DNA of 64,000 nt, from the sequence record MH494197.1; one strand, 5' to 3'. Below the pieces are notes generated by a model. That model saw only the letters and a program-made list of their open reading frames with translations, did no database searches and had not been told where the DNA came from. Position 1 is the stretch's first letter, and each line of letters begins with the position of its first letter. A program made the translations under genes and the position numbers. Positions 6,677 to 58,681 of the stretch are shown here, piece by piece.

Positions 6677-8805
6677 ATGGCAGTTTTTCCAATTTAGAAG
6701 GGACCATGATGCCAACATTCAAGTTGGGTAAACGTGGTGCTTCTATTAATTTTGTAAACGATTCTGTCGCAATCAAAGACTTTTAGGCGAAACGTTCCTA
6801 CCTGTTAAGGTGGGAACTCCTAATGACGATGATTCCGCAGTAAACGTTAGGTATCTTGAAGATAACCCAAATGCTTTATTTGGCGTACTTCCACCAACAA
6901 ATGACATTGGTAAAAATAACAACACTTATTTTCAAGTTGATTCTGAGGGTATTGTTGATATCTTTGCAAAACAAATGATGTTTGGGTAAAATCATTATAC
7001 ATTAATAAAAATGTCCTTTCCAGTGTTAACGGTGCTGATTATATCGGACTTATTACTGGAGGAACACTTCAACAGGCACAGTTTTACATAACACCAGAAG
7101 AGTTTGGTGCAAAGGTGATGGCATCACTGATGACACGGCGGCGTTAACGCATGTGCAGTTTATGCTAAAGAACACAAAATCCAAATTCAAGCTGGTGGTA
7201 ATTATCGTATCAGAACTGCTGTTTATTTGAATGATATTCAATGGTTTGGTGGTACAATCACTGGTAACGGTGGCACAATGGTATCGGTACTGAATAGTAC
7301 AATCCAACAAGCAACATTAACAGGATGTTATTTAAAATTCTTTGGTGGTAATGGTAAATTTTATTTTAATAAATTTATTAATATTACAAGTACTGCTGCA
7401 TTTCTAATGCAAGGTATGACTGAATCAGGTACTATCGACTTCTGCTTTAATGAAATGACACAATGTAAGTACGGTGTTCTTCAGCAAGGCACTGGTGAAA
7501 AATGACAGTTGGGCGTTATTCATACAACCACATCCATGATATATATGGTGATGCAATTGAATTGAACGTAGTCAACTCACATTACCCAGACGGATTTGTA
7601 ATAGAAGGCAACTTGATTGAAAACGTAGATGGTACAAATGCACCAATTCCTCTTTCAAACTGGGGTATTGGTATCGGTGTTGCAGGTTCTGGTCCTTATG
7701 ATGTGAATGCTGATGATTCACAATATGTAAAAAATTCGTTATAAAAATAACCGCTTGTACAATGTCCGTCAATGTATTCACGTTGAGTTGGGTAAAGACT
7801 TTAAAATTCTCAATAATGAAGTTTATCCATCAACGTTGGTATCAATTGGTACTGGTTTGACAACCGCTGGTGTAATTACTTATGGTTCTGTTGATTTTAT
7901 TATTGATGGCCTATCTGGGCATCTATTAAATGATCCATCAGTAACTAACCGTATGGTTTCTATTAACTGGGGCGTAACATCTGGTAAATTTGCTGGTCCT
8001 CCACGAAACTTTAAATTATGTAATCTCCACATTCCTGAGTCGTCTATTATTGTGTATACTTCAGGCTCTGATAATTGGCTAAATACTACTGAACTTTCTA
8101 ATATTACATGTAGTAGAATTCAATGGCGTGGATTGCCGTCATCTTCCAAGTTTAATAATATCAGTACTAAAGAACTTGATGTTATTGGACAACACCTTGC
8201 AACTGAAGGTGAAGGAGGGGCTTATATACTCGCTCTAAATATACATATACCAACTGGACTAATTGTGTTGTTCAAGATGATTGTAACATATCAAAATATA
8301 GTTTCTCAAGAATGTATGTTGACCGTATTGACCAATCATCTAATAACTTTAAAGTAACCACTGCAATTGATGGAACGGGTCATCGTGGACCTGTAGTAAT
8401 ACCTGTAGTTGAACAGTATTACGTGCCTTATGATGTTTTTCCGGTGGGAGATATTTCCCAACAGGAACAATTATCCATAAACAATCAGGTGGAAAATTTA
8501 TTGTTACAGTAGGTGGTTCTTTCTTTGGTCGATATGACACAATTAGACAAACAGTTGCAGGACAAACTTATATCGAAGCATTGGGTGTATCATGGGGTGA
8601 TAATCAATATGCTAAAGCTGCTGGAACCGAAATCCTAATCACAGGAGCAGGGGAAAATGGCGAAGATTTAAAACATATATCACTAGAGCAGTTTATGTTG
8701 TTAATAATGCGTATCGTATCGATATTGCCGATCCGATTGTTACTGCTACCGCAGCAGGGCATTATTGAAAGCTGCTCAACCAATAACATATATCACCCTA
8801 TCTTA
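6677..8805 (+). CDS. Tailspike with WcaM-like (colanic acid-degrading) beta-helix domain, frameshifted
   Basis: Fragments contain NWGIGIGVAGSGPY...QYVKNF and RQCIHVELGKDF, matching recalled WcaM motifs (NWGIGIGLAG; RQLxHVENGKHF). An FGAKGDGITDDTAA pectate-lyase-type start lies near 7100-7140. Confidence 0.7.
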
Positions 8806-8820
8806 AAGGAGATTATAAAA

Positions 8821-9715
8821 ATGGCAGTTTTTCTAATTTAGAAGGAACCATGAAGAAGACCTTCATACTTGGTAAAAATGGTGCACAAATTGCCACTAAT
8901 GGTAATGTTGTTCAAATCCAGAACTACACGGGTACACAACTTCTTCCTGTTTCAGCAGGTGACCCAACCGCAAATACACACTTGGTTACATTGGGTTATT
9001 TGAATACACATAGCGGTGGTGGTGGCGGTTCCGGTATTTTACGTGGAACTATTGCACCATCTGAATCAATCGGTGTAGATGGTGACGCTTACTTCTTAGT
9101 TGACAGTACTAATATTATTCAGATCTATATTAAAGACCTTGGTGTTTGGAAGCCTCTCCAAAGCACAACTCCGTACTGATAGTTCTTACGTTACTACTGA
9201 AATCGTTCCTGTATCGGCATTTACATTAGTTCACGGAACAACAGATCAATATACTTATTCTTTACCTGAATCAGTACATGGTCGTGGTCCAGATATTATG
9301 GTTCAGCTACAGGGTGATCCCGGTAACATCCCACTTGACACTGTATTCCAAACTAACGTCACTGTGAGTGGTATTGGTGACATTACGATTGATGTTATTG
9401 GTCAAATTACTGAATACACAAGTGTCAAAGTCAACATCATAGGAGCAACAACAATGACAGTACCTTATAGTAAATTAATTAATATAGCAGATTGGGTAGC
9501 ATCTGGTGATGATTACACCATTACTGTTCCAGCGTCAGAACATAACCAAACACCTGACAATTTGTATATTTCTATATATTCAAATAAAACACCGCAGTAC
9601 AGCAGCATCACCATTTGAACTGGTAATAACCGAAACTCAAATTGATGCAAGTGGTAATGTTACATTCACTTCTGATGAAGCGTTTAGTGGTAAAATAGTA
9701 ATTTCCGGTAAATAA
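8821..9715 (+). CDS. Tail fibre/spike-associated protein sharing the N-terminal anchor of the tailspike (frameshifted)
   Basis: After one-base correction both 6677 and 8821 start MAVFSNLEGTMxxTFxLGKxGA; fragments 8850..9179, 9100..9618, 9506..9715. Confidence 0.6.
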
Positions 9716-9716
9716 A

Positions 9717-9754
9717 AAATAATCCAGACTGCGTTCCATCGAGTCTGGATTTTT
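9717..9754 (+). terminator. Intrinsic terminator
   Basis: aatccagact-cgttccatc-gagtctggattttt stem followed by a T-run. Confidence 0.7.
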
Positions 9755-9829
9755 ATATTAATAACTAAATATATGTATATTAACAAGGTCAAATGTATTT
9801 TATGCTTTTGCCTATTTGGAGGGAACTAA

Positions 9830-12800
9830 ATGTACTCGATTAAAACAGATCTAGATATAACTGGTGGTGCAACGGTTGGTAAAGATCTTCTTGTGAAAGG
9901 CGATGCAGTATTCAATAAAAATCTAACAGTTAATGGAACTGTAACTTTTGCTGACGCTGTATTCACTGCAATTGAAGCAGGAACTGTAGACATTTCATCT
10001 ACACTAGATGTTGCTGGTAAAGCATCATTGAATGGTGGAATTGAAGTTCATGGTAATTCCGTAATTGGTAATTTGCCTGTTGGCTCTGATACTGCAACGA
10101 TTAATTCTAATGCACAATTCCAAAGCCCAGTATCAATGGCAGGTAACCTAACACAAACCGCTGGCACTGCTGTACTAAAAGATACCCAAGTGGCATCAAT
10201 GGATGTTCTTGGAACTTCTTCATTTAAAGGTAATATTACTGCTGAAACTGGCACTACCGCAGCATTTGACAAAATAACTGCAACTGATGCAACATTCACA
10301 AACACTGCAACTACTGATATCACATCAACTGGAACTGCAAACTTTAAAGATGTGAATATTTCCGGTACACTAGGTGGAACATTTAGTCTATCTGATGTTA
10401 ATGCAACAACTCTAACTGTTTCTGGTTTAACCAGTCTACAAGGTGGTGTTACATTAGGTTCCAACATTACTGGTGTGAATAGTAGTGCAAACTTCCGTGA
10501 TATTAAAATTGGTTCCAATGCTGCAAACACTAACTACCGTTTGAGCTTTAACTATTCTGCTCCAAGTCTTCGCCCAACTGTAATTCTACAGAACGAAATC
10601 CAATCAGAATTGATGTCTCCAGCTACCCTAAGTGTATTGAAAACTGCATCTTTTGGTGATTCGTCATTATCCACTTTTGGTATTACTGGTAATGGTCTAA
10701 ACAAACTAGATTACCTAACAGTATCTGGTAACTCTGTTCAAGATCCAGCAACTCCACTATTACAAGTAACTTCAGGTAAAACTAAAGTTCATGATTTCGA
10801 AGTAACAGGAACTGCAACTATTCCTAACATTGAAAGTACTGGTACTGCTAATTTTAATAACATCAACGTATCTGGTACACTCGGCGGTACTTTCAGTCTT
10901 GATGATATTGAAGCAAACACTCTAACTGTTTCTGGATTAACTAGCCTTGTTGGTGGTGTAACTTTAGGTGCTGATATTTCCGGTGCTAATAGTACTGCTA
11001 ATTTTAAAGCAGTAAGTTTAGGACAAAACGCAGCCGATGCTAACGTTAAGTATGGTTTTGCTTATTCTGCCCGGTGCTCGTCCAACTGTAATTCTACAAA
11101 ATGAAATTCAGTCTGAACTAGTATCTCCAGCAGTACTAAATGTACAAAAACTGCTACCTTTGGTGATGCATCTCTTGCAACCTATGGTATCACAGGTAAC
11201 GGTCTAAACAAACTAGATTATCTATCTATTACTGGTAATGGTACACAAAGTCCAGCTACCCCACAACTACAAGTAGCTGGTAAATCAGTACTAAATGATG
11301 TTGAATTCACTGGTACTGTAACTGGTCTAACTGTTGATGTGAGTGGACAAGATCTAACTCCTAAATCAGTAGTTGCTGCTGAAGCAATCAAAGGTCAAAC
11401 CCTTGAATCAGTTGGTCAAACCACCGTAGGAACTAACCTACAAGTTGGTGGAACTGCTAATGTTGTTGGTGCACTAACTGGTACTGCTGCTACCTTCACT
11501 GGTGATGTAAGTGCTGCTAAAGGTACTTTCAGTGGTGATGTTAGCGTTACTGGTCAAACTGTAACTGTACGTGATTTAGTAGTAACTGGTACAACTACTG
11601 GTGTAACTGCCCAAGCTGATGTTGATGGTCTTGATATCGCCCCAAATAAAGTTGATGTTACAACAACACTATCTGTTGCTGGGGACACTACTTTAGCTGG
11701 CCTAACTGCTAGTTCAGTAACCAGTACTGGTGATGTTACTGGTGCGTCTGTATCTGGTAATACAGTAACTGCGGCTGGTGCACTATCTGGTGGTTCTCTT
11801 GCAGTAACTGGTGCTGGTTCTATGGCTTCACTAACTGTTCCAAGTATTACTGGTGACACTACTTTTGCTAATAACGTAACTATTACTGGAACACTAACTC
11901 CGAGTAGTATAGATTTAAGCACTACTGATGTAAGTGCTGCTTCTTTAACAACTACTGGTAACGTAACTGTTGGTGGTTCTCTTGCAGTAACTGGTGCTAT
12001 TGATTTGTCTGCTGCTGATGTAGTAACAAAATCAGTTAGTGCAACTAACCCAAGTACATTTGGTGTAATTAATGCATCTTCTGTTGTCGCAACTGGTGAC
12101 GTTTCAGGTGGCACTCTAACTACTACTGGTGCAGCGAAAGTAGGAACACTAACTAGTACTGGTGTAGTATCTGGTTCGCGTTTGTCTTCTGGTACTGCAA
12201 CAATCTCAACTTCTGTAACAGTTCCAACTTTACAAGCTGAAGCTGCTGGTGCTGGTACACTAAATCTAGCAAGTAATGTTGTCGCGGCAAAGATCTAACT
12301 GTCACTGGTGTATTCAAACCTGAAGGTGGTCTTGACCTAACAACTGTTGATATTACTGCAAACTCACTAACTACTACTGCTGATGTTAATGTTGGTGGAA
12401 ACTTAGTAGTTGATGGTACTTTTGACCTAAGTGCTGCTGATGTGTCTGTGAAATCTCTTGCAAGTGCAGAGACAATTACAAGTGCTGGTGTTATTACCGT
12501 TACCGATTCAACCAATACTAGTTCGTTACCTAAAATTACTTCAACTGATGCAACACTCTTTACAGTAAATGCAGGTACTATTAATGCAACTGGCAACAGT
12601 GTACTACAAAGTGTATCAGCTACTCAAGTAACTGCAACTAGTGCTGAATTGACTGGTGTTGGTCTTGGTCTTCAAGTCGATAATGATGCAAACGTTGGTG
12701 GTGCATTATCTGTTGGTGGAATCGCAACTGTTGGTTCTTTAACAACAACTGCTGCTTCTCTTAATATTGCAAAAATACTGCAATCACTGGTGATTTAGCT

Positions 12801-54761: not shown

Positions 54762-55340
54762 TTACATTGAATTCAGAATCAGGAAAATCTTTAGAAAATG
54801 AATCAATTTGTTCTTGTGAAAGTTCTTCTTTTGTGGAAATAACATTTTAACTAAATTTTTACCACATTCAATTGCTTCATCATACGACATAGTTTCCCAT
54901 GTTCCATGCCAAGTACTAGGTTCATATTCTGTCAGTACAGAAATGAAATCAATATCATCGGGTGTATACCAAACAGCATTTTGATTCCCTGATGGTGCTG
55001 ATTGATTTTTACCTAATAAAACAATTGGCTTTTCATAAGGAATGTTAAATATCAACCCAGATTCTAAGTTAAGAACAGTTTGAATAGATGAACCCTCCAA
55101 TTTTGGAGTAATAGTACCATCCTTAAAGAAAATTTGTACATGACCCAAGAGTGGGGTTTCATATGGTGTAAGTACATTTTCAGAAACTGATGTGGGTTTT
55201 GCCGTTGTGAAAATACCAGATGGGGTGACCATTAATTTATTATCAAAATTCTGATAATGCAATTCACTATCCACATCATAATGATAAATGTCTAGATTTG
55301 GTTGAGATAGTAGTAATTTTGCTAAATCATGAGATTTCAT
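54762..55340 (-). CDS. Hypothetical protein, paralog of 53463..53990
   Basis: MKSHDLAKLLLSQPNLDIYH...VTPSGIF...WYTPDDI. Confidence 0.65.
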   Translation of the reverse strand: MKSHDLAKLLLSQPNLDIYHYDVDSELHYQNFDNKLMVTPSGIFTTAKPTSVSENVLTPYETPLLGHVQIFFKDGTITPKLEGSSIQTVLNLESGLIFNIPYEKPIVLLGKNQSAPSGNQNAVWYTPDDIDFISVLTEYEPSTWHGTWETMSYDEAIECGKNLVKMLFPQKKNFHKNKLIHFLKIFLILNSM

Positions 55341-55419
55341 TTTATTTCTCCAAAGAAAAGGAGAGTCACAATGACTCTCCATATATTTTATTGTAAAACT
55401 TTGAGTTTGTAAAGCATTC

Positions 55420-55826
55420 CTTCACAAAAACTCATAATGTCTTCTAGCGTGTTAGTACTACCATAGTCTTCAGCCTCTTCTAGCATAGCATGAATGGCTT
55501 TACATTGACTAACATATTCTTCAAGAATTGGTACACAATCCTCGATAGGGTAAAACGATAACTGTTACCAGTACCTACCTGCAATGCCCGCGAGTGTTCA
55601 TAATACCCTCTACAAATGCATCAACGTACTCAGGTAACTCTTTGTATAGTTCATCCAATTGTAGGTGCTTCGTGTAGAAATGGCTCTGTAAATGCCAGTT
55701 GTGAGCAGCAGCACTTAAAAATAAACTATTCTCAATAAATGTAAGTAGTACTTCATCATAAGAACTATCTTCTTCAGTATCTCCGATAAAGTCCATTACA
55801 TGTCGTAAATCATTAATATTTTCCAT
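55420..55826 (-). CDS. Ferritin/Dps-like four-helix protein (DUF5856-like), frameshifted
   Basis: AAAHNWHLQSHFYTKHLQLDELYKELPEYVDAFVEG resembles the Dps helix A/B pattern; 3' end approximate. Confidence 0.55.
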
Positions 55827-56002
55827 AAATCTCTCCTTAGAGTTATTCTATGGTATTTAGTTAATAATAAAGGTAACTTCAGGATTCATTTCTGAAACTG
55901 CATTTCTCTTACTTCTATTCCATAGTACTCTATTGTTATATAATGAAGAATCACAAATTATAAGTAAGCAATTCCTTAATCTACTTACAGTACTTTGATT
56001 AC

Positions 56003-56284
56003 TTAAATCAGTTTCTGTAACAAAAATACATTATCAGGAACTTCTACAGGAATTGATTTATCAAAGAAGAAAACTACAATAGGTCTGTTTGTATGAACTA
56101 AATTAATAAAGTCTAAAATACTGTTATAAAATTCAGTTCCTTTGTTTAAACTTAATGGATCTTTGATTCTCTTCAAATAGGTCTGAACCAAATTATGATC
56201 GCTTTTGATTTGATACTCAAAATATTCTTTGAATAACATTTGTGTTAATTCAGATGTATTGGATATTTTCGTTGTGTTACTCAT
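56003..56284 (-). CDS. Hypothetical protein
   Basis: 93-aa ORF. Confidence 0.5.
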   Translation of the reverse strand: MSNTTKISNTSELTQMLFKEYFEYQIKSDHNLVQTYLKRIKDPLSLNKGTEFYNSILDFINLVHTNRPIVVFFFDKSIPVEVPDNVFLLQKLI

Positions 56285-56414
56285 TCACTTCGTTCTCTCG
56301 TAACTCAAGAAGTCACTACGTTTACTTCGTAAACTAGTTCCTTCTGAAAATGATAATGTACTTTAAAAGCTTGACGGATTTGTTGAGGACTATTTCATCC
56401 CCGAGGAAGAAGGT

Positions 56415-56922
56415 AATAAAAAGAGACAATTAAGTCTCTCTGACGATGATGGCATCGGATATTATCGAATTGCGAATTTCTCAAATTTTGGACGGATCTT
56501 TCCTGTACCAAAATTTAGAGAAAAGCGGGTTGCTCGGTTTCTCTCTATCGCAGTCATATGCAACGGTCGCTGGTCTTTTCATCAACAGCACTCAGTACTA
56601 AACTCTATTCGATCAAAGTAGTACCTGTTCTCAAATTTTGGACGCAACTTTCTTGTAAAATCGCGTCCACAATCCTGAACTCCTTAGCAAATTCGTAAGG
56701 TGCGAACCTTATACATCTATCTAGGAACTCTCTGTGTGCTTGGAGTTCTTTATACAGCCGTGTCGCCGTGATTCGTGGTCTTATCTCGTGTTTGTTTGAT
56801 TGCCAGTACTCTAACAGGTTTCTTTTGCTGTTCGCTACAACGGTAAAGCTCATCTATCCTTTACATTTTCAAGAGAAGTAGGTTCTCATTATCCATTTTT
56901 CAATGTCCGTTGTCATTTTACA
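56415..56922 (-). ncRNA. Candidate large structured non-coding RNA (family unknown)
   Basis: About 41% GC versus under 30% in the downstream flank; at least six hairpins; 17-nt direct repeat; extended -10 TGaTATAAT upstream and a hairpin plus U-tract terminator downstream. Confidence 0.5.
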
Positions 56923-56928
56923 ATATAC

Positions 56929-56956
56929 ATTATATCACTAGGATGTATTATGTCCC
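56929..56956 (-). promoter_or_regulatory. sigma70-like promoter with extended -10
   Basis: Minus strand GGGACA-N16-TATAAT with TG at -15/-14. Confidence 0.55.
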
Positions 56957-57123
56957 GTTACATGTATACCTTTTTCAAATCCTTGGAACAACGGTCAAAA
57001 TTGTGTTGATGAATTCGACATCCTCTTTGATATTGGAGTCTATAGCATCATTCTCGTTTCTTGTTGTGTTCCTGTATTTGTGTTCAGGGTGATTGTATAC
57101 CACCTTGACTACATTATTTAGGT

Positions 57124-57369
57124 CTACAAAAATGACGATTTTTGCGTATAGGAAGCCTGAAGCTTGATGAGTTTACCATCGTTTTGTAGATTAGTCTTGT
57201 GAATTAGTTCTTCAATACCATCTAAATGGCTATAGCTATCCTGTTCTTTGACGAATGTAACAGTTACCAGTACTGACTTCTCATCTCCAAAGTCAGAGAT
57301 ATTTTTAACAGCACTGATGATTTCTAAGTTTGAAAAATCTAATTCTTTTAGCATTACAAATATTTCCAC
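57124..57369 (-). CDS. Hypothetical protein
   Basis: 81-aa ORF. Confidence 0.45.
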   Translation of the reverse strand: MEIFVMLKELDFSNLEIISAVKNISDFGDEKSVLVTVTFVKEQDSYSHLDGIEELIHKTNLQNDGKLIKLQASYTQKSSFL

Positions 57370-57710
57370 AAAGTTCGATAAGTGATAATTTCTTCTCTGG
57401 TAACAGAAACTTCATAGCACTTAACACCATCAGTTTCATTTCTGAATGGTTCTGCTGGTCTATCTTCTGTTAAACCTCGTTCATACGTACAATGATAATA
57501 TTTGTTCGTGTTCATGTCAAGAAAAACTAGATCAAATTCTTCTGTCCATCGTCTATGCCCTTTACTTTCATTACTAATGATTTTGTACTTAACATCGGGA
57601 TTGAATGATTCAGTACTGTCATCCCATGTACCATAGTCAGTATATTCATCATCTTCATCTAACTCTGCCAGATGCCACATTAACTGTGGTAAAAAGATTT
57701 TAGATTTCAT
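57354..57710 (-). CDS. Hypothetical protein
   Basis: 118-aa ORF, RBS GGAG; GHRRW...LVF...YERGLTE motif common in large phages. Confidence 0.6.
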   Translation of the reverse strand: MKSKIFLPQLMWHLAELDEDDEYTDYGTWDDSTESFNPDVKYKIISNESKGHRRWTEEFDLVFLDMNTNKYYHCTYERGLTEDRPAEPFRNETDGVKCYEVSVTREEIITYRTLWKYL

Positions 57711-57725
57711 TTATTTTCTCCAAAA

Positions 57726-57753
57726 ATAGGGACTCGATTTCTCAAGTCCCTAT
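57726..57753 (-). terminator. Intrinsic terminator-like hairpin
   Basis: atagggact-cgatttctca-agtccctat. Confidence 0.6.
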
Positions 57754-57960
57754 CATAACATATTAATTGTGATTATTCAATTTCTTTTGTTCTTTTTAGA
57801 GCTTTCATATGTCAAAATCACGAACATGCCATATATGGTCGGTTTCCCATAGTTCTGTACGTAAACGGCGTTCTTCCAATTCTTCTGGAGTAGGAATTTT
57901 AGATTTCTTCTTATCTTTATTGAAAAATCATTCATATGTTCTTCCAGTAGATTTCTACCC

Positions 57961-58365
57961 TTAACTTTTTCGGAATTCATCTACTGATTCAGTTTTATTA
58001 GAACGAAGACTGTTACAACGTGAACACATGGTGTTGTAATTTGACTCTAAATCAGGTCCACCCTTAGATGCTAGTTGGTTATGATCTACTGTCATCAGTA
58101 CTTCATATAGACCACAAACTGCATAGACATTTAAGTGAGGTTTACCATATACCGGATCAGTGCTATGTGAACGCTCAATGCGAACTTCAGTGGCTTCAAT
58201 ACCACACGCAACGCATTTACAATTCTTAACGAATGTAAGTACTTTTTGTGGGAAGTATCGGAAAGTAACACCGTTATATGTATAGCGTTTCATCTGTGTA
58301 CTTCTTTGATTTAACTCATCAAGAAGTGATAGTTTGGCAACATAGTAGACCTGATATTTTGACAT
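57961..58365 (-). CDS. HNH endonuclease
   Basis: CVAC, MTVDHNQLASKGG...NYNTMCSRCN. Confidence 0.85.
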   Translation of the reverse strand: MSKYQVYYVAKLSLLDELNQRSTQMKRYTYNGVTFRYFPQKVLTFVKNCKCVACGIEATEVRIERSHSTDPVYGKPHLNVYAVCGLYEVLMTVDHNQLASKGGPDLESNYNTMCSRCNSLRSNKTESVDEFRKS

Positions 58366-58367
58366 TT

Positions 58368-58681
58368 TTAATCCTCGGATTTAATTTTAACCTTAACATC
58401 TTGATTTTGTAAATCACGAATAGTTTTAATTAATGCATCATGTTTTAGTGCACAGTCATTGTACATTGCATCCCATTTTACGAGTACTGCAAGAATTTCA
58501 GCACCATCATATCCTCTGAACCCGTTTTATCGACCATGATTTTACTTGGTAGTGGTGTATTTTCGTCACAACGTTCAAGTAAGATTTCTTGTTCTACAAT
58601 TGGTTTAGGTTGATACTTAATTTCTTCAGCACAACCACTAATTAATAGAAAAGAAATTGCAAATACTAAAGCGTATTTCAT
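58368..58681 (-). CDS. o-spanin (Rz1-like outer-membrane lipoprotein), frameshifted
   Basis: Signal peptide with lipobox LISG-C; Pro-rich; ends YNDCALKHDALIKTI; ATGA-coupled to the i-spanin. Confidence 0.75.

Follow-up and report, generated by a model that had tools for sequence, protein, structure and literature searches.

A large pseudoknotted noncoding RNA family in RaK2-like jumbo phages and enterobacterial islands

The locus and its noncoding RNA gene

The window analysed here, a stretch of 64,000 nt, corresponds to positions 322443-386442 of record MH494197.1, Escherichia phage CMSTMSU (blastn), which is classed in Asteriusvirus (121Q/PBECO4 group) among the RaK2-like jumbo phages. Comparative sequence analysis showed 56366-56938 on its minus strand to be a noncoding RNA (ncRNA) gene of ~570 nt, with at least 18 helices, at least five pseudoknots and a nearly invariant core (GACCGUUGC...GAUAGAGAGAAAC...ACCCGCUUUCG). 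A preliminary description of this stretch had proposed a stand-alone structured phage ncRNA of ~500 nt on the minus strand with its own promoter, and this proposal was strongly supported by conservation, covariation, the lack of a conserved open reading frame (ORF) and the lack of an Rfam match. Its statements about the sequence were all confirmed and its interpretation was essentially right; that the RNA belongs to a multi-copy family (four per genome) and is present in bacterial islands too was not known to its author. The main features of the locus, which we call copy A, are as follows.

56929..56956 (-), promoter: -35-like GGGACA at 56951-56956, a 16-nt spacer, TG at 56936-56937 and -10 TATAAT at 56929-56934
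56366..56922 (-), RNA body: 5' leader, 5' domain, 3' pseudoknot core and conserved 3' block (full-length nhmmer match, E=3e-142)
56412..56439 (-), terminator-like hairpin AGAGAC-UUAAUU-GUCUCU with U-rich tract, an optional insert
56366..56405 (-), conserved 3' block: a C-run/G-run hairpin (damaged here by indels of the assembly), followed by GAUGAAAuAGUCCUCAACAAAUCC-GUCAAG, site of the second CGUCA motif
56276..56345 (-), downstream hairpins: GUUUAC-GAA-GUAAAC at 56320-56334 and GUUAC...GUAAC at 56276-56306, the latter with loop GAACGAAGUGA

The extended -10 promoter named in the preliminary description scored 10/12 in a consensus scan (56956->56929), which made it the joint-best sigma-70-like site in the region and the sole TG-extended one. 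It aligns with a G(A/G)AAC-N15-TGnTATAAT element that is conserved before every homolog, and we infer a transcription start at ~56922. The promoter is of a class found throughout these phages, and the pattern G(A/G)A(A/C)(A/C)-N13-17-TGnTA(T/C)A(A/C)T has 30 matches across the genome, of which 28 are on the gene-rich strand. The motif resembles the 'TGAAACG' promoter class described for phages CBB and GAP32, which the CBB authors found mainly upstream of DNA-synthesis genes (PMC5259590).

The GC content of 56341-56820 is exactly 195/480 (40.6%), as had been counted by hand, compared to 26.5% in the downstream flank (55800-56290), 34.4% in the upstream flank and 36.7% in the whole window. The perfect 17-nt direct repeat TTCTCAAATTTTGGACG at 56478 and 56628 was also confirmed and extends to 30 nt at 90% identity; the longest exact repeat in 300 shuffles of the region was 12 nt.

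The CMSTMSU record carries the UNVERIFIED_ORG flag, and its genes for ribonucleotide reductase, PhoH, tRNA nucleotidyltransferase, ClpP/ClpA and topoisomerase are each fragmented into 2-4 coding sequences (CDS). Homopolymer errors are apparent inside the RNA as well, where CCCCTGCGGGGGG of 121Q reads CTC--GGGG in CMSTMSU. Given the flag and the split genes, single-base indels in the window are untrustworthy, and the error-prone assembly makes the presence or absence of an ORF in the window unreliable. Because of the assembly indels, the window copy was left out of the structural reference, for which we used 121Q and other relatives. A 97.8% identical second copy of 56290-56956 lies at 23.7 kb (L005:23712-24387), separated by 355 kb in a record of 386 kb. 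Most probably it represents the terminal direct repeat assembled twice, since phage CBB has a direct terminal repeat of 22 kb (PMC5259590), and the ~2% mismatch between the two copies gives a rough estimate of the assembly error rate.

Structure of the RNA and its coding potential

For the structural analysis, 52 copies with <97% mutual identity were aligned, all column pairs were scanned for covarying diagonals, and the structure was then curated. The curated structure contains 90 pairs in 20 helices, four of which cross others as pseudoknot helices. Its fit to the alignment was compared with column shuffles and with controls in which the 3' partners were slid by 1-3 columns.

Cells with standard pairs: 94.6% observed, 77.0 +/- 0.4% in shuffles, 36-42% when slid
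Pairs changed on both sides: 65/90 observed, 49.0 +/- 2.2 in shuffles, 26-34 when slid
Cells changed on both sides: 827 observed, 244 +/- 15 in shuffles, 80-155 when slid
Covariation score: 0.50 observed, 0.18 in shuffles, 0.07-0.09 when slid

None of the 500 column shuffles reached any observed measure. RNAalifold, applied to 25 copies, returned 70 pairs, 40 with compensatory changes and almost none broken. The fifth pseudoknot, PK1, which joins the 5' leader to the P2 loop, is represented by at least 12 distinct compensated sequence pairs, including CUGAUUGA/UCAAUCAG, CUGAAAGG/CCUUUCAG and GUGUGG/CCACAC. The minimum free energy z-scores of the 121Q copy were modest (-3.3 sense, -2.9 antisense), so the case for structure rests on covariation, not on folding energy. 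From 5' to 3', the helices of copy A are as follows.

56907..56913 (-), PK1, ACAACGG, paired with CCGUUGU at 56837-56843 in the P2 loop
56857..56876 (-), P1 hairpin with near-invariant loop GAAAAyGUA; 5/5 pairs covary, 96% of cells paired
56834..56849 (-), P2 hairpin (G-N-A...U-N'-C), whose loop is the 3' strand of PK1; 100% paired, one pair UA31/CG14/AU7
56827-56831 with 56754-56758 (-), P3; 100% paired, 4/5 pairs compensated
56814-56817 with 56766-56769 (-), P4; 99.5% paired
56761-56763 (ACA) with 56713-56715 (UGU) (-), PKa, a long-range helix; 98.7% paired, GC40/AU11 and UA48/CG3
56725..56748 (-), P5 hairpin; 5/5 pairs covary
56738-56740 (P5 loop) with 56686-56688, just before invariant UAAGGGAG (-), PKb; GC25/UA15/AU4 and CG25/AU20
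56696..56711 (-), P6 hairpin UAAGGU-UCGC-ACCUUA, shortened to UAAG-GUCA-CUUA in Mimasvirus
56627..56679 (-), P7 hairpin with module 1 (UGGACGC...GCGUCCA AAAUUUGAGAA) and the repeat copy 56628-56644; closing pairs covary
56594..56625 (-), P8, a long hairpin; 12/12 pairs covary
56607-56613 (AUCGAAU, P8 loop) with 56464-56470 (AUUCGAU) (-), PKc; 7/7 pairs covary, 99.4% paired
56569-56589 (-), P9 hairpin, part of the 3' core 56471..56589
56560-56564 with 56529-56533 (-), S1 of an H-type pseudoknot, GUUGC/GCAAC; 100% paired
56541-56545 with 56521-56525 (-), S2 of the H-type pseudoknot, GAGAG/CUUUy; 100% paired
56548-56552 with 56471-56475 (-), P10 helix; UA18/CG15/AU11
56479..56518 (-), P11 hairpin with module 2 (in some copies only) and the repeat copy 56478-56494; closing pairs covary
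56442..56456 (-), M1 hairpin GAUG...CGUC with the first CGUCA motif; weak covariation

Several conserved sequence elements accompany these helices. A (C/U)AGAUGAG motif follows P1 at 56849-56856, P3 and P4 (56754..56831) surround a variable insert together with conserved CACGGCAAUGCGGC, and the UGU strand of PKa sits within conserved GAUAGAyrUAUAAGG. The 3' core (56471..56589) contains the most conserved sequence of the family, GACCGUUGC...GAUAGAGAGAAACnGnnnnACCCGCUUUCG; within it S2 has compensated variants AGGGG/CCUCU in RaK2 and GGAAG/CUUCC in XaC1 and the islands.

All five stems listed in the preliminary description coincide with family-consensus helices: 56478-56522 corresponds to P11 plus module 2, 56518-56543 to S2 of the core pseudoknot, 56639-56669 to the module-1 hairpin within P7, 56696-56711 to P6 and 56725-56748 to P5. 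Covariation is seen in P5, in S2, in 2/4 pairs of P6 and in the pairs that close P7 and P11, and the module hairpins were left unscored. The minus-strand call, which had been made from G-U pairs, was correct, the frequent G-U pairs being compatible with that strand only. The internal repeats are real but do not form the core. They form the 3' halves of modules 1 and 2. These are two occurrences of one peripheral, optional module with consensus (G/U)UACAAUAUAGAUCCGUCCAAAAUU, which is found at the tips of two different helices and numbers 0, 1 or 2 per RNA copy. An origin of the iteron type, which had been offered as an alternative, does not fit two repeats that lie 150 nt apart in optional hairpin modules missing from many homologs.

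The two CGUCA motifs vary in step, being CUUCA twice in RaK2, CGACA twice in L105 (an island copy) and CGAAG twice in a divergent metagenomic clade, and the 5' strand of M1 changes to match these variants. This suggests that both motifs pair with one partner, probably M1's 5' strand or that strand in a second molecule, in an alternative or trans pairing. Long-range pairing of the 3' CGUC motif with CAGAUGAG or ACGA, as given by differing RNAalifold runs, was rejected, being unsupported by the variants in RaK2, L105 and the divergent clade.

ORFs of 82 aa and 51 aa exist in the window, the latter annotated in 121Q as gp516, and an error-prone assembly could break a coding frame artificially. 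The locus might on these grounds code for protein, or have once done so, through the 82-aa ORF on the minus strand, the 51-aa ORF on the plus strand or a gene read through stops, a reading that the comparison with relatives leaves with practically no credibility. Well-assembled relatives have stops and frameshifts in every frame, and across 29 copies the longest stop-free stretch shifts among strands and frames, with no frame staying open. The preliminary description had seen no convincing ORF here, and the 82-aa ORF (56605-56853, -), although present in the window, is unconserved among homologs, with two stops in 121Q (95% identical DNA) and stops and frameshifts elsewhere. The blastn comparison with RaK2/GAP32/121Q-like genomes that it had suggested likewise recovered homologs in which the 82-aa frame is not kept and compensatory pairing is abundant. 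The frame of the 51-aa ORF is kept without stops in 6/52 copies. Substitutions in helices are compensatory, and the single-base indels tolerated in conserved blocks are not multiples of three. A mini-ORF after GGGGGGAUG is unconserved, and a gene read through stops, suggested by the 82-aa frame continuing beyond the ORF, was dropped because of frameshifts in 121Q and others.

Tiny CDS are annotated within the RNA in some records, namely two 23-aa ORFs in fHe-Yen9-04 (L004:2580-2732) and the antisense 51-aa gp516 in 121Q (L001:2669-2824). These are almost certainly spurious gene calls.

Distribution, paralogs and transcript ends

With a 2.5-kb query, Asteriusvirus genomes aligned throughout, and Mimasvirus phages and the distant genera (GAP32, CBB) aligned only at 56372-56886 (blastn); the RNA is thus more conserved than the flanking genes. 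A 667-nt query matched 71 phage records from Escherichia, Klebsiella, Salmonella, Erwinia, Yersinia, Cronobacter, Pectobacterium, Serratia and Xanthomonas hosts. Most of these matches have no annotated feature beneath them, and most records have 3-5 matching places. The core is still conserved in RaK2; RaK2 and K64-1 gave a single match at blastn sensitivity, compared to 3-5 per genome in other RaK2-like genera. Full-length homologs were found in RaK2, GAP32, CBB, fHe-Yen9-04, Serratia BF, Munch and XaC1. In 121Q, GAP32, CBB, fHe-Yen9-04, RaK2, Munch, SNUABM_47 and XaC1 the match falls within a 560-910-nt annotation gap, in which a tiny ORF is occasionally called.

A pattern search with the conserved core retrieved 21 loci from IMG/VR (4 of them in 121Q), 61 metagenome loci and 8 loci in bacterial assemblies. 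A profile hidden Markov model gave full-length matches of 500-600 nt in almost all of these loci, with E-values down to 1e-156, and profile searches added 31 and then 69 further matches. No match to the RNA was found in the plasmid collection. One divergent, GC-richer metagenomic clade (L056, L062, L080, L081, L088, L099) retains the 3' pseudoknot core but differs greatly in the 5' domain; only its 3' domain is recognisable, and CGAAG replaces both CGUCA motifs.

Each Asteriusvirus genome (121Q, CMSTMSU) has four paralogs, which in CMSTMSU are located as follows.

Paralog A: 56366-56938 (-) of the window, ~379 kb of the record, with the repeat copy at ~24 kb
Paralog B: 294.1-294.7 kb
Paralog C: 73.4-73.9 kb
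Paralog D: 184.0-184.5 kb

A local search of the record showed that paralogs B, C and D are ~70-74% identical, and that all copies are co-oriented and lie in unannotated gaps. In the phylogeny, each of the four Asteriusvirus paralogs groups 121Q with CMSTMSU. Several paralog lineages are common to multiple genera, indicating that the duplications are old. The island copies are nested in a lineage together with copies from XaC1 and from a metagenomic phage contig of 349 kb.

The 3' end of the RNA had been placed at a GAGAC hairpin followed by a U tract. This hairpin exists (56422-56439, with a U/T-rich stretch at 56412-56422) but is not the 3' boundary of the RNA. It is present in about half of the copies, where it covaries (GAGAC/GUCUC vs GUACAC/GUGUAC), and is missing from the C and D paralogs and many metagenome copies; the islands have a weak hairpin without a U tract. 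A terminator scan of the window did not call it. A terminal intrinsic terminator at 56412-56439 was therefore rejected, since the hairpin is internal and optional and conservation runs ~60 nt beyond it; possibly it acts as a partial terminator. The block 3' of it, CCCC-UGC-GGGGGG-AUGAAAAUG.CCUCAACAAAUCUCGUCA, is kept in all copies, including those that lack the hairpin, and its C/G hairpin is 98% paired with one-sided changes only.

An AT-rich spacer separates the 3' block from two downstream hairpins with compensated stems, which may be part of the same transcript. The first, GUUUAC-GAA-GUAAAC, had already been pointed out for the window. Counterparts of the two, also with compensated stems, are found 3' of the RNA in other phages and in islands. 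In copy A the second extends over the next gene's start codon (56282-56284). Its loop motif, ACGnAGUGA, occurs 17 times in the genome, which is near chance and speaks against a general regulatory site.

In the B paralogs of 121Q, CBB, GAP32 and others, the hairpins are followed by a bidirectional terminator (AAAAAAACCAGC...GCUGGUU) and then by a convergent gene. Because the B copy is bounded in this way, at least the B paralog is a stand-alone transcription unit by its sequence context. In the loci L015, L022, L020, L026, L025 and L018, the terminator (AAAAAAACCAGC-loop-GCTGGTT) was observed ~150-200 nt after the B-type RNA, with the convergent gene conserved.

These ends bear on whether the RNA is a cis-acting leader, that is, a very large riboswitch-like element or attenuator, or a processive antitermination RNA (HK022 put, EAR) controlling downstream read-through, which in the islands would drive transcription antisense to a convergent cI repressor gene. 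Such a role would suit the internal hairpin with its U tract, the conserved hairpins that reach the next start codon in copy A, the co-orientation of most copies with their downstream genes and the convergence with cI in islands. We nevertheless consider it improbable: the B copies run into a bidirectional terminator and then a convergent gene, the genes downstream of other copies are mutually unrelated (hypothetical proteins, ADP-ribosylglycohydrolases, a DNA methyltransferase), about half of the copies lack the terminator-like hairpin, beyond which the conserved RNA continues, and the size and complexity of the RNA are far above those of known leaders.

In several jumbo phages (L023, L032, L037, which is Munch gene 372, L014 and L021), one RNA paralog is followed directly or at a short distance by an ADP-ribosylglycohydrolase gene. 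These phage enzymes could serve as counter-defence against ADP-ribosylating systems like those of the islands described below.

Bacterial islands, known RNAs and possible functions

Eight matches were found in Enterobacterales assemblies, including a complete Serratia fonticola chromosome and a 484-kb Enterobacter chinensis contig. On the latter (L108), a truncated ppdD pilin gene is followed by a gene for a 563-aa large serine recombinase, the RNA, a convergent gene for a CI-like S24 repressor, and then genes for a Ner-like helix-turn-helix (HTH) protein and a 286-aa membrane protein; the sister islands also have an LprI-like protein. The L108 island is inserted into the 5' end of ppdD. A recurrent layout, comprising an integrase (large serine or tyrosine), the RNA, the CI-like S24 repressor, the Ner-like HTH protein, the 286-aa membrane protein, an LprI-like lysozyme-inhibitor protein and a small serine recombinase, was seen in bacterial and metagenome loci (L108, L057, L045, L061, L063, L101, L104, L095, L096, L052, L087). 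Sister islands have a tyrosine integrase instead and carry additional cargo that includes DarT, an ADP-ribosylglycohydrolase and a UvrD-like helicase. In L057, the cargo at 7543-11249 (RNA-sense) encodes a DarT-like ADP-ribosyltransferase, a 544-aa ADP-ribosylglycohydrolase and a UvrD/GajB-like helicase, which looks like a DarTG-type defence system with a glycohydrolase in place of the macrodomain antitoxin.

At the S. fonticola locus (L106), the island comprises a serine recombinase gene, two ParB-like genes and the RNA. Next to it two nearly identical rof genes stand in tandem (L106:4775-5490), which suggests a duplicated integration target. Among complete E. coli genomes, 2/5426 gave a match, both partial and unannotated; strain LR-29-1, the one inspected, has it in an island adjoining ffs, where the PGAP annotation leaves a 1.4-kb gap. 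The integrase and the RNA are the only features common to all island types. The copies of L105, L106 and L108 have a similar motif upstream of the RNA, GAAAC or GAAAT followed by TGnTATACT.

The Rfam comparison suggested in the preliminary description (cmscan, including group I, ROOL, GOLLD and tmRNA) found no family: with permissive filters, at E<=10 for window positions 55000-58500 and at E<=1 for seven good homologs, Rfam 15 gave only chance-level matches to unrelated small families (E 0.06-8), far below gathering scores, and the models of ROOL, GOLLD, OLE, HEARO, raiA, tmRNA, RNase P and 6S were not matched. Searching the literature by phage name, by topic and with sequence strings turned up no description of the RNA, and ARAGORN detected no tRNA or tmRNA near it at 25 loci. 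The RNA family is undescribed and new.

The size and pseudoknotted core of the RNA, and its presence in T4-like phages, recall group I introns, and the preliminary description had noted a resemblance to the group I P7 (R/S) elements. A degenerate or ORF-less mobile ribozyme, either a group I-like remnant or another self-splicing or self-cleaving element placed at four sites, would agree with the multi-copy, pseudoknot-rich nature of the RNA, with its intron-like size, with the R/S-like motif and with an HNH endonuclease gene ~1 kb away in the window. This explanation is very improbable. Even at E<=10, none of the ribozyme or intron models in Rfam scores; Intron_gpI (RF00028) has no match at that threshold on 55000-58500 and none at E<=1 on the seven homologs. 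All copies are intergenic, with their own promoter and unrelated complete genes on both sides, and interrupt no gene. The R/S-like AUAGUCC is confined to the A copies of Asteriusvirus, one paralog of one genus, and reads AAUGUCC, AUUGCC or AAAUCCC elsewhere; the paralogs are ancient, not recently spread. The HNH endonuclease ORF itself (134 aa, 57961-58365, -) lies ~1 kb upstream of the RNA promoter and is a shortened counterpart of 121Q gp513; we saw no sign that it is tied to the RNA.

By analogy, GOLLD, ROOL and OLE are the nearest relatives in kind, and ColE1 RNA II and the T4 origin transcripts the nearest in possible mechanism. GOLLD, ROOL and OLE, ornate RNAs whose structures have been studied by cryo-electron microscopy (PMC12286853), are likewise large (500-800 nt), intricate and pseudoknotted, reside in phages or prophage-like elements, are often unannotated and were found via covariation. 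They differ from the new RNA in that there is no sequence or structure match and in that its hosts are Enterobacterales jumbo phages, not Lactobacillales or rumen organisms; in addition, it has no adjacent tRNAs and has 3-5 diverged paralogs per genome. In the related jumbo phage PA5oct, RNA-seq defined four unannotated, ORF-free ncRNAs of 236-619 nt, two of which lie in the terminal repeat and are highly expressed (PMC7318152); copy A likewise lies in a terminal-repeat region. With the family profile (nhmmer --max, E<=100), PA5oct ncRNA001, 002 and 004 showed no homology, ncRNA003 being outside the comparison, and the likeness is therefore an analogy that lends no expression support to the family. 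No transcriptome was found in the literature for any RaK2-like phage carrying the RNA.

The numerous invariant unpaired nucleotides and nested pseudoknots lead us to favour, by a slight margin over doubt, an RNA that acts in trans as a folded molecule. During infection it would form part of a ribonucleoprotein, serve as a decoy or sponge, self-assemble or act as a catalyst. The variable peripheral modules and ancient paralogs might then provide different specificities, and the island copies might engage the same partner, of phage or host, so as to exploit it, sense it or interfere with it. Several points weigh against a trans-acting RNA. The 5' and 3' ends and the abundance of every family member are predictions from sequence, and no result points to a protein or RNA partner. 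Compensatory changes are few or absent in hairpins M1 and M2 and in the C/G hairpin. The internal terminator-like hairpin and the conserved hairpins up to the next start codon would also fit a cis role in some copies, and four roughly spaced, co-oriented copies, together with islands lacking a replication gene, would also fit an origin.

The main rival to a trans-acting RNA, which we regard as unlikely, is accordingly an RNA-primed replication origin, in which the promoter would make a structured pre-primer like ColE1 RNA II or the R-loop transcripts of T4 oriF/oriG. The 3' part of the RNA (G-run and AT-rich spacer) would form a persistent hybrid and be processed to prime the leading strand; four copies would serve a 350-kb genome, and islands without a replicase would borrow the phage replisome via the element. 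Such an origin would be RNA-structure-dependent and not of the iteron type. ColE1 RNA II and the T4 origins share with the new RNA a promoter-driven transcript of ~550 nt whose fold could govern R-loop formation, the presence of several copies per large genome and the possibility of being borrowed by replicase-less elements. The co-oriented positions of the four copies (~24/379, 73.5, 184 and 294 kb), the size of ~550-700 nt, the promoter class placed by the CBB authors mainly before DNA-synthesis genes, the G6 run and AT-rich stretch after the structured part, the RNase H and T4-type replication proteins encoded by the phage, and the island types that share only integrase and RNA and have no recognisable replicase would all accord with an origin. 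However, priming leaves the five pseudoknots and the long invariant single-stranded stretches unexplained, T4 origins need no elaborate RNA fold, and the new RNA has a far more complex and conserved fold than the ColE1 and T4 transcripts and no homology to them. No plus-strand promoter-like site was found in the 5' 150 nt of the RNA by consensus scan, and hence no promoter for an antisense transcript of the RNA I type. Cumulative GC skew tracks gene orientation and leaves the loci unmarked, and the optional internal terminator-like hairpin would oppose read-through priming.

Whichever way the RNA acts, it might be a functional module common to RaK2-like jumbo phages and to the integrase-bearing islands that parasitise or defend against them, a proposal we make tentatively and hold to be doubtful. 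The structured RNA would license replication or propagation, or it would form a self-assembling complex which the islands, with a similar promoter motif in front of it, copy to hijack, sense or poison an infecting phage. The islands resemble the P4, PICI and PLE satellites in that the RNA lies beside an integrase and a CI/Ner-type switch, with defence cargo and a helper-exploiting layout. They differ in that the RNA is shared with the putative helper. We know of no satellite family with a 570-nt structured RNA shared with a putative helper. If true, the proposal would give the first demonstrated case of a large structured RNA serving as a common currency of phage-satellite or phage-defence conflict.

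Large intricate RNAs of bacteria and phages are rare, with few classes (OLE, GOLLD, ROOL, raiA, HEARO), each of which has opened new biology or a new RNA architecture. The family described here is large (~570 nt, at least five pseudoknots) and has very strong covariation support. It accounts for a recurrent "empty" gap of 600-900 nt in dozens of published jumbo-phage genomes, some with spurious small ORFs. Its position beside integrases in enterobacterial islands with DarT-type and other anti-phage cargo points to an undescribed RNA-level link between jumbo phages and mobile islands. Carriers among cultured coliphages include 121Q, PBECO4, phAPEC6 and Sharanji, the last with E. coli K-12 MG1655 recorded as its host, which makes the RNA experimentally accessible.

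Two neighbouring genes of copy A are shorter in the window than in 121Q, probably through truncation in the assembly. The gene directly downstream of the RNA (56003-56284, -) encodes 93 aa, compared to 142 aa in 121Q, and the Dps-like gene beyond it (55575-55826, -) encodes 83 aa, compared to 136 aa.

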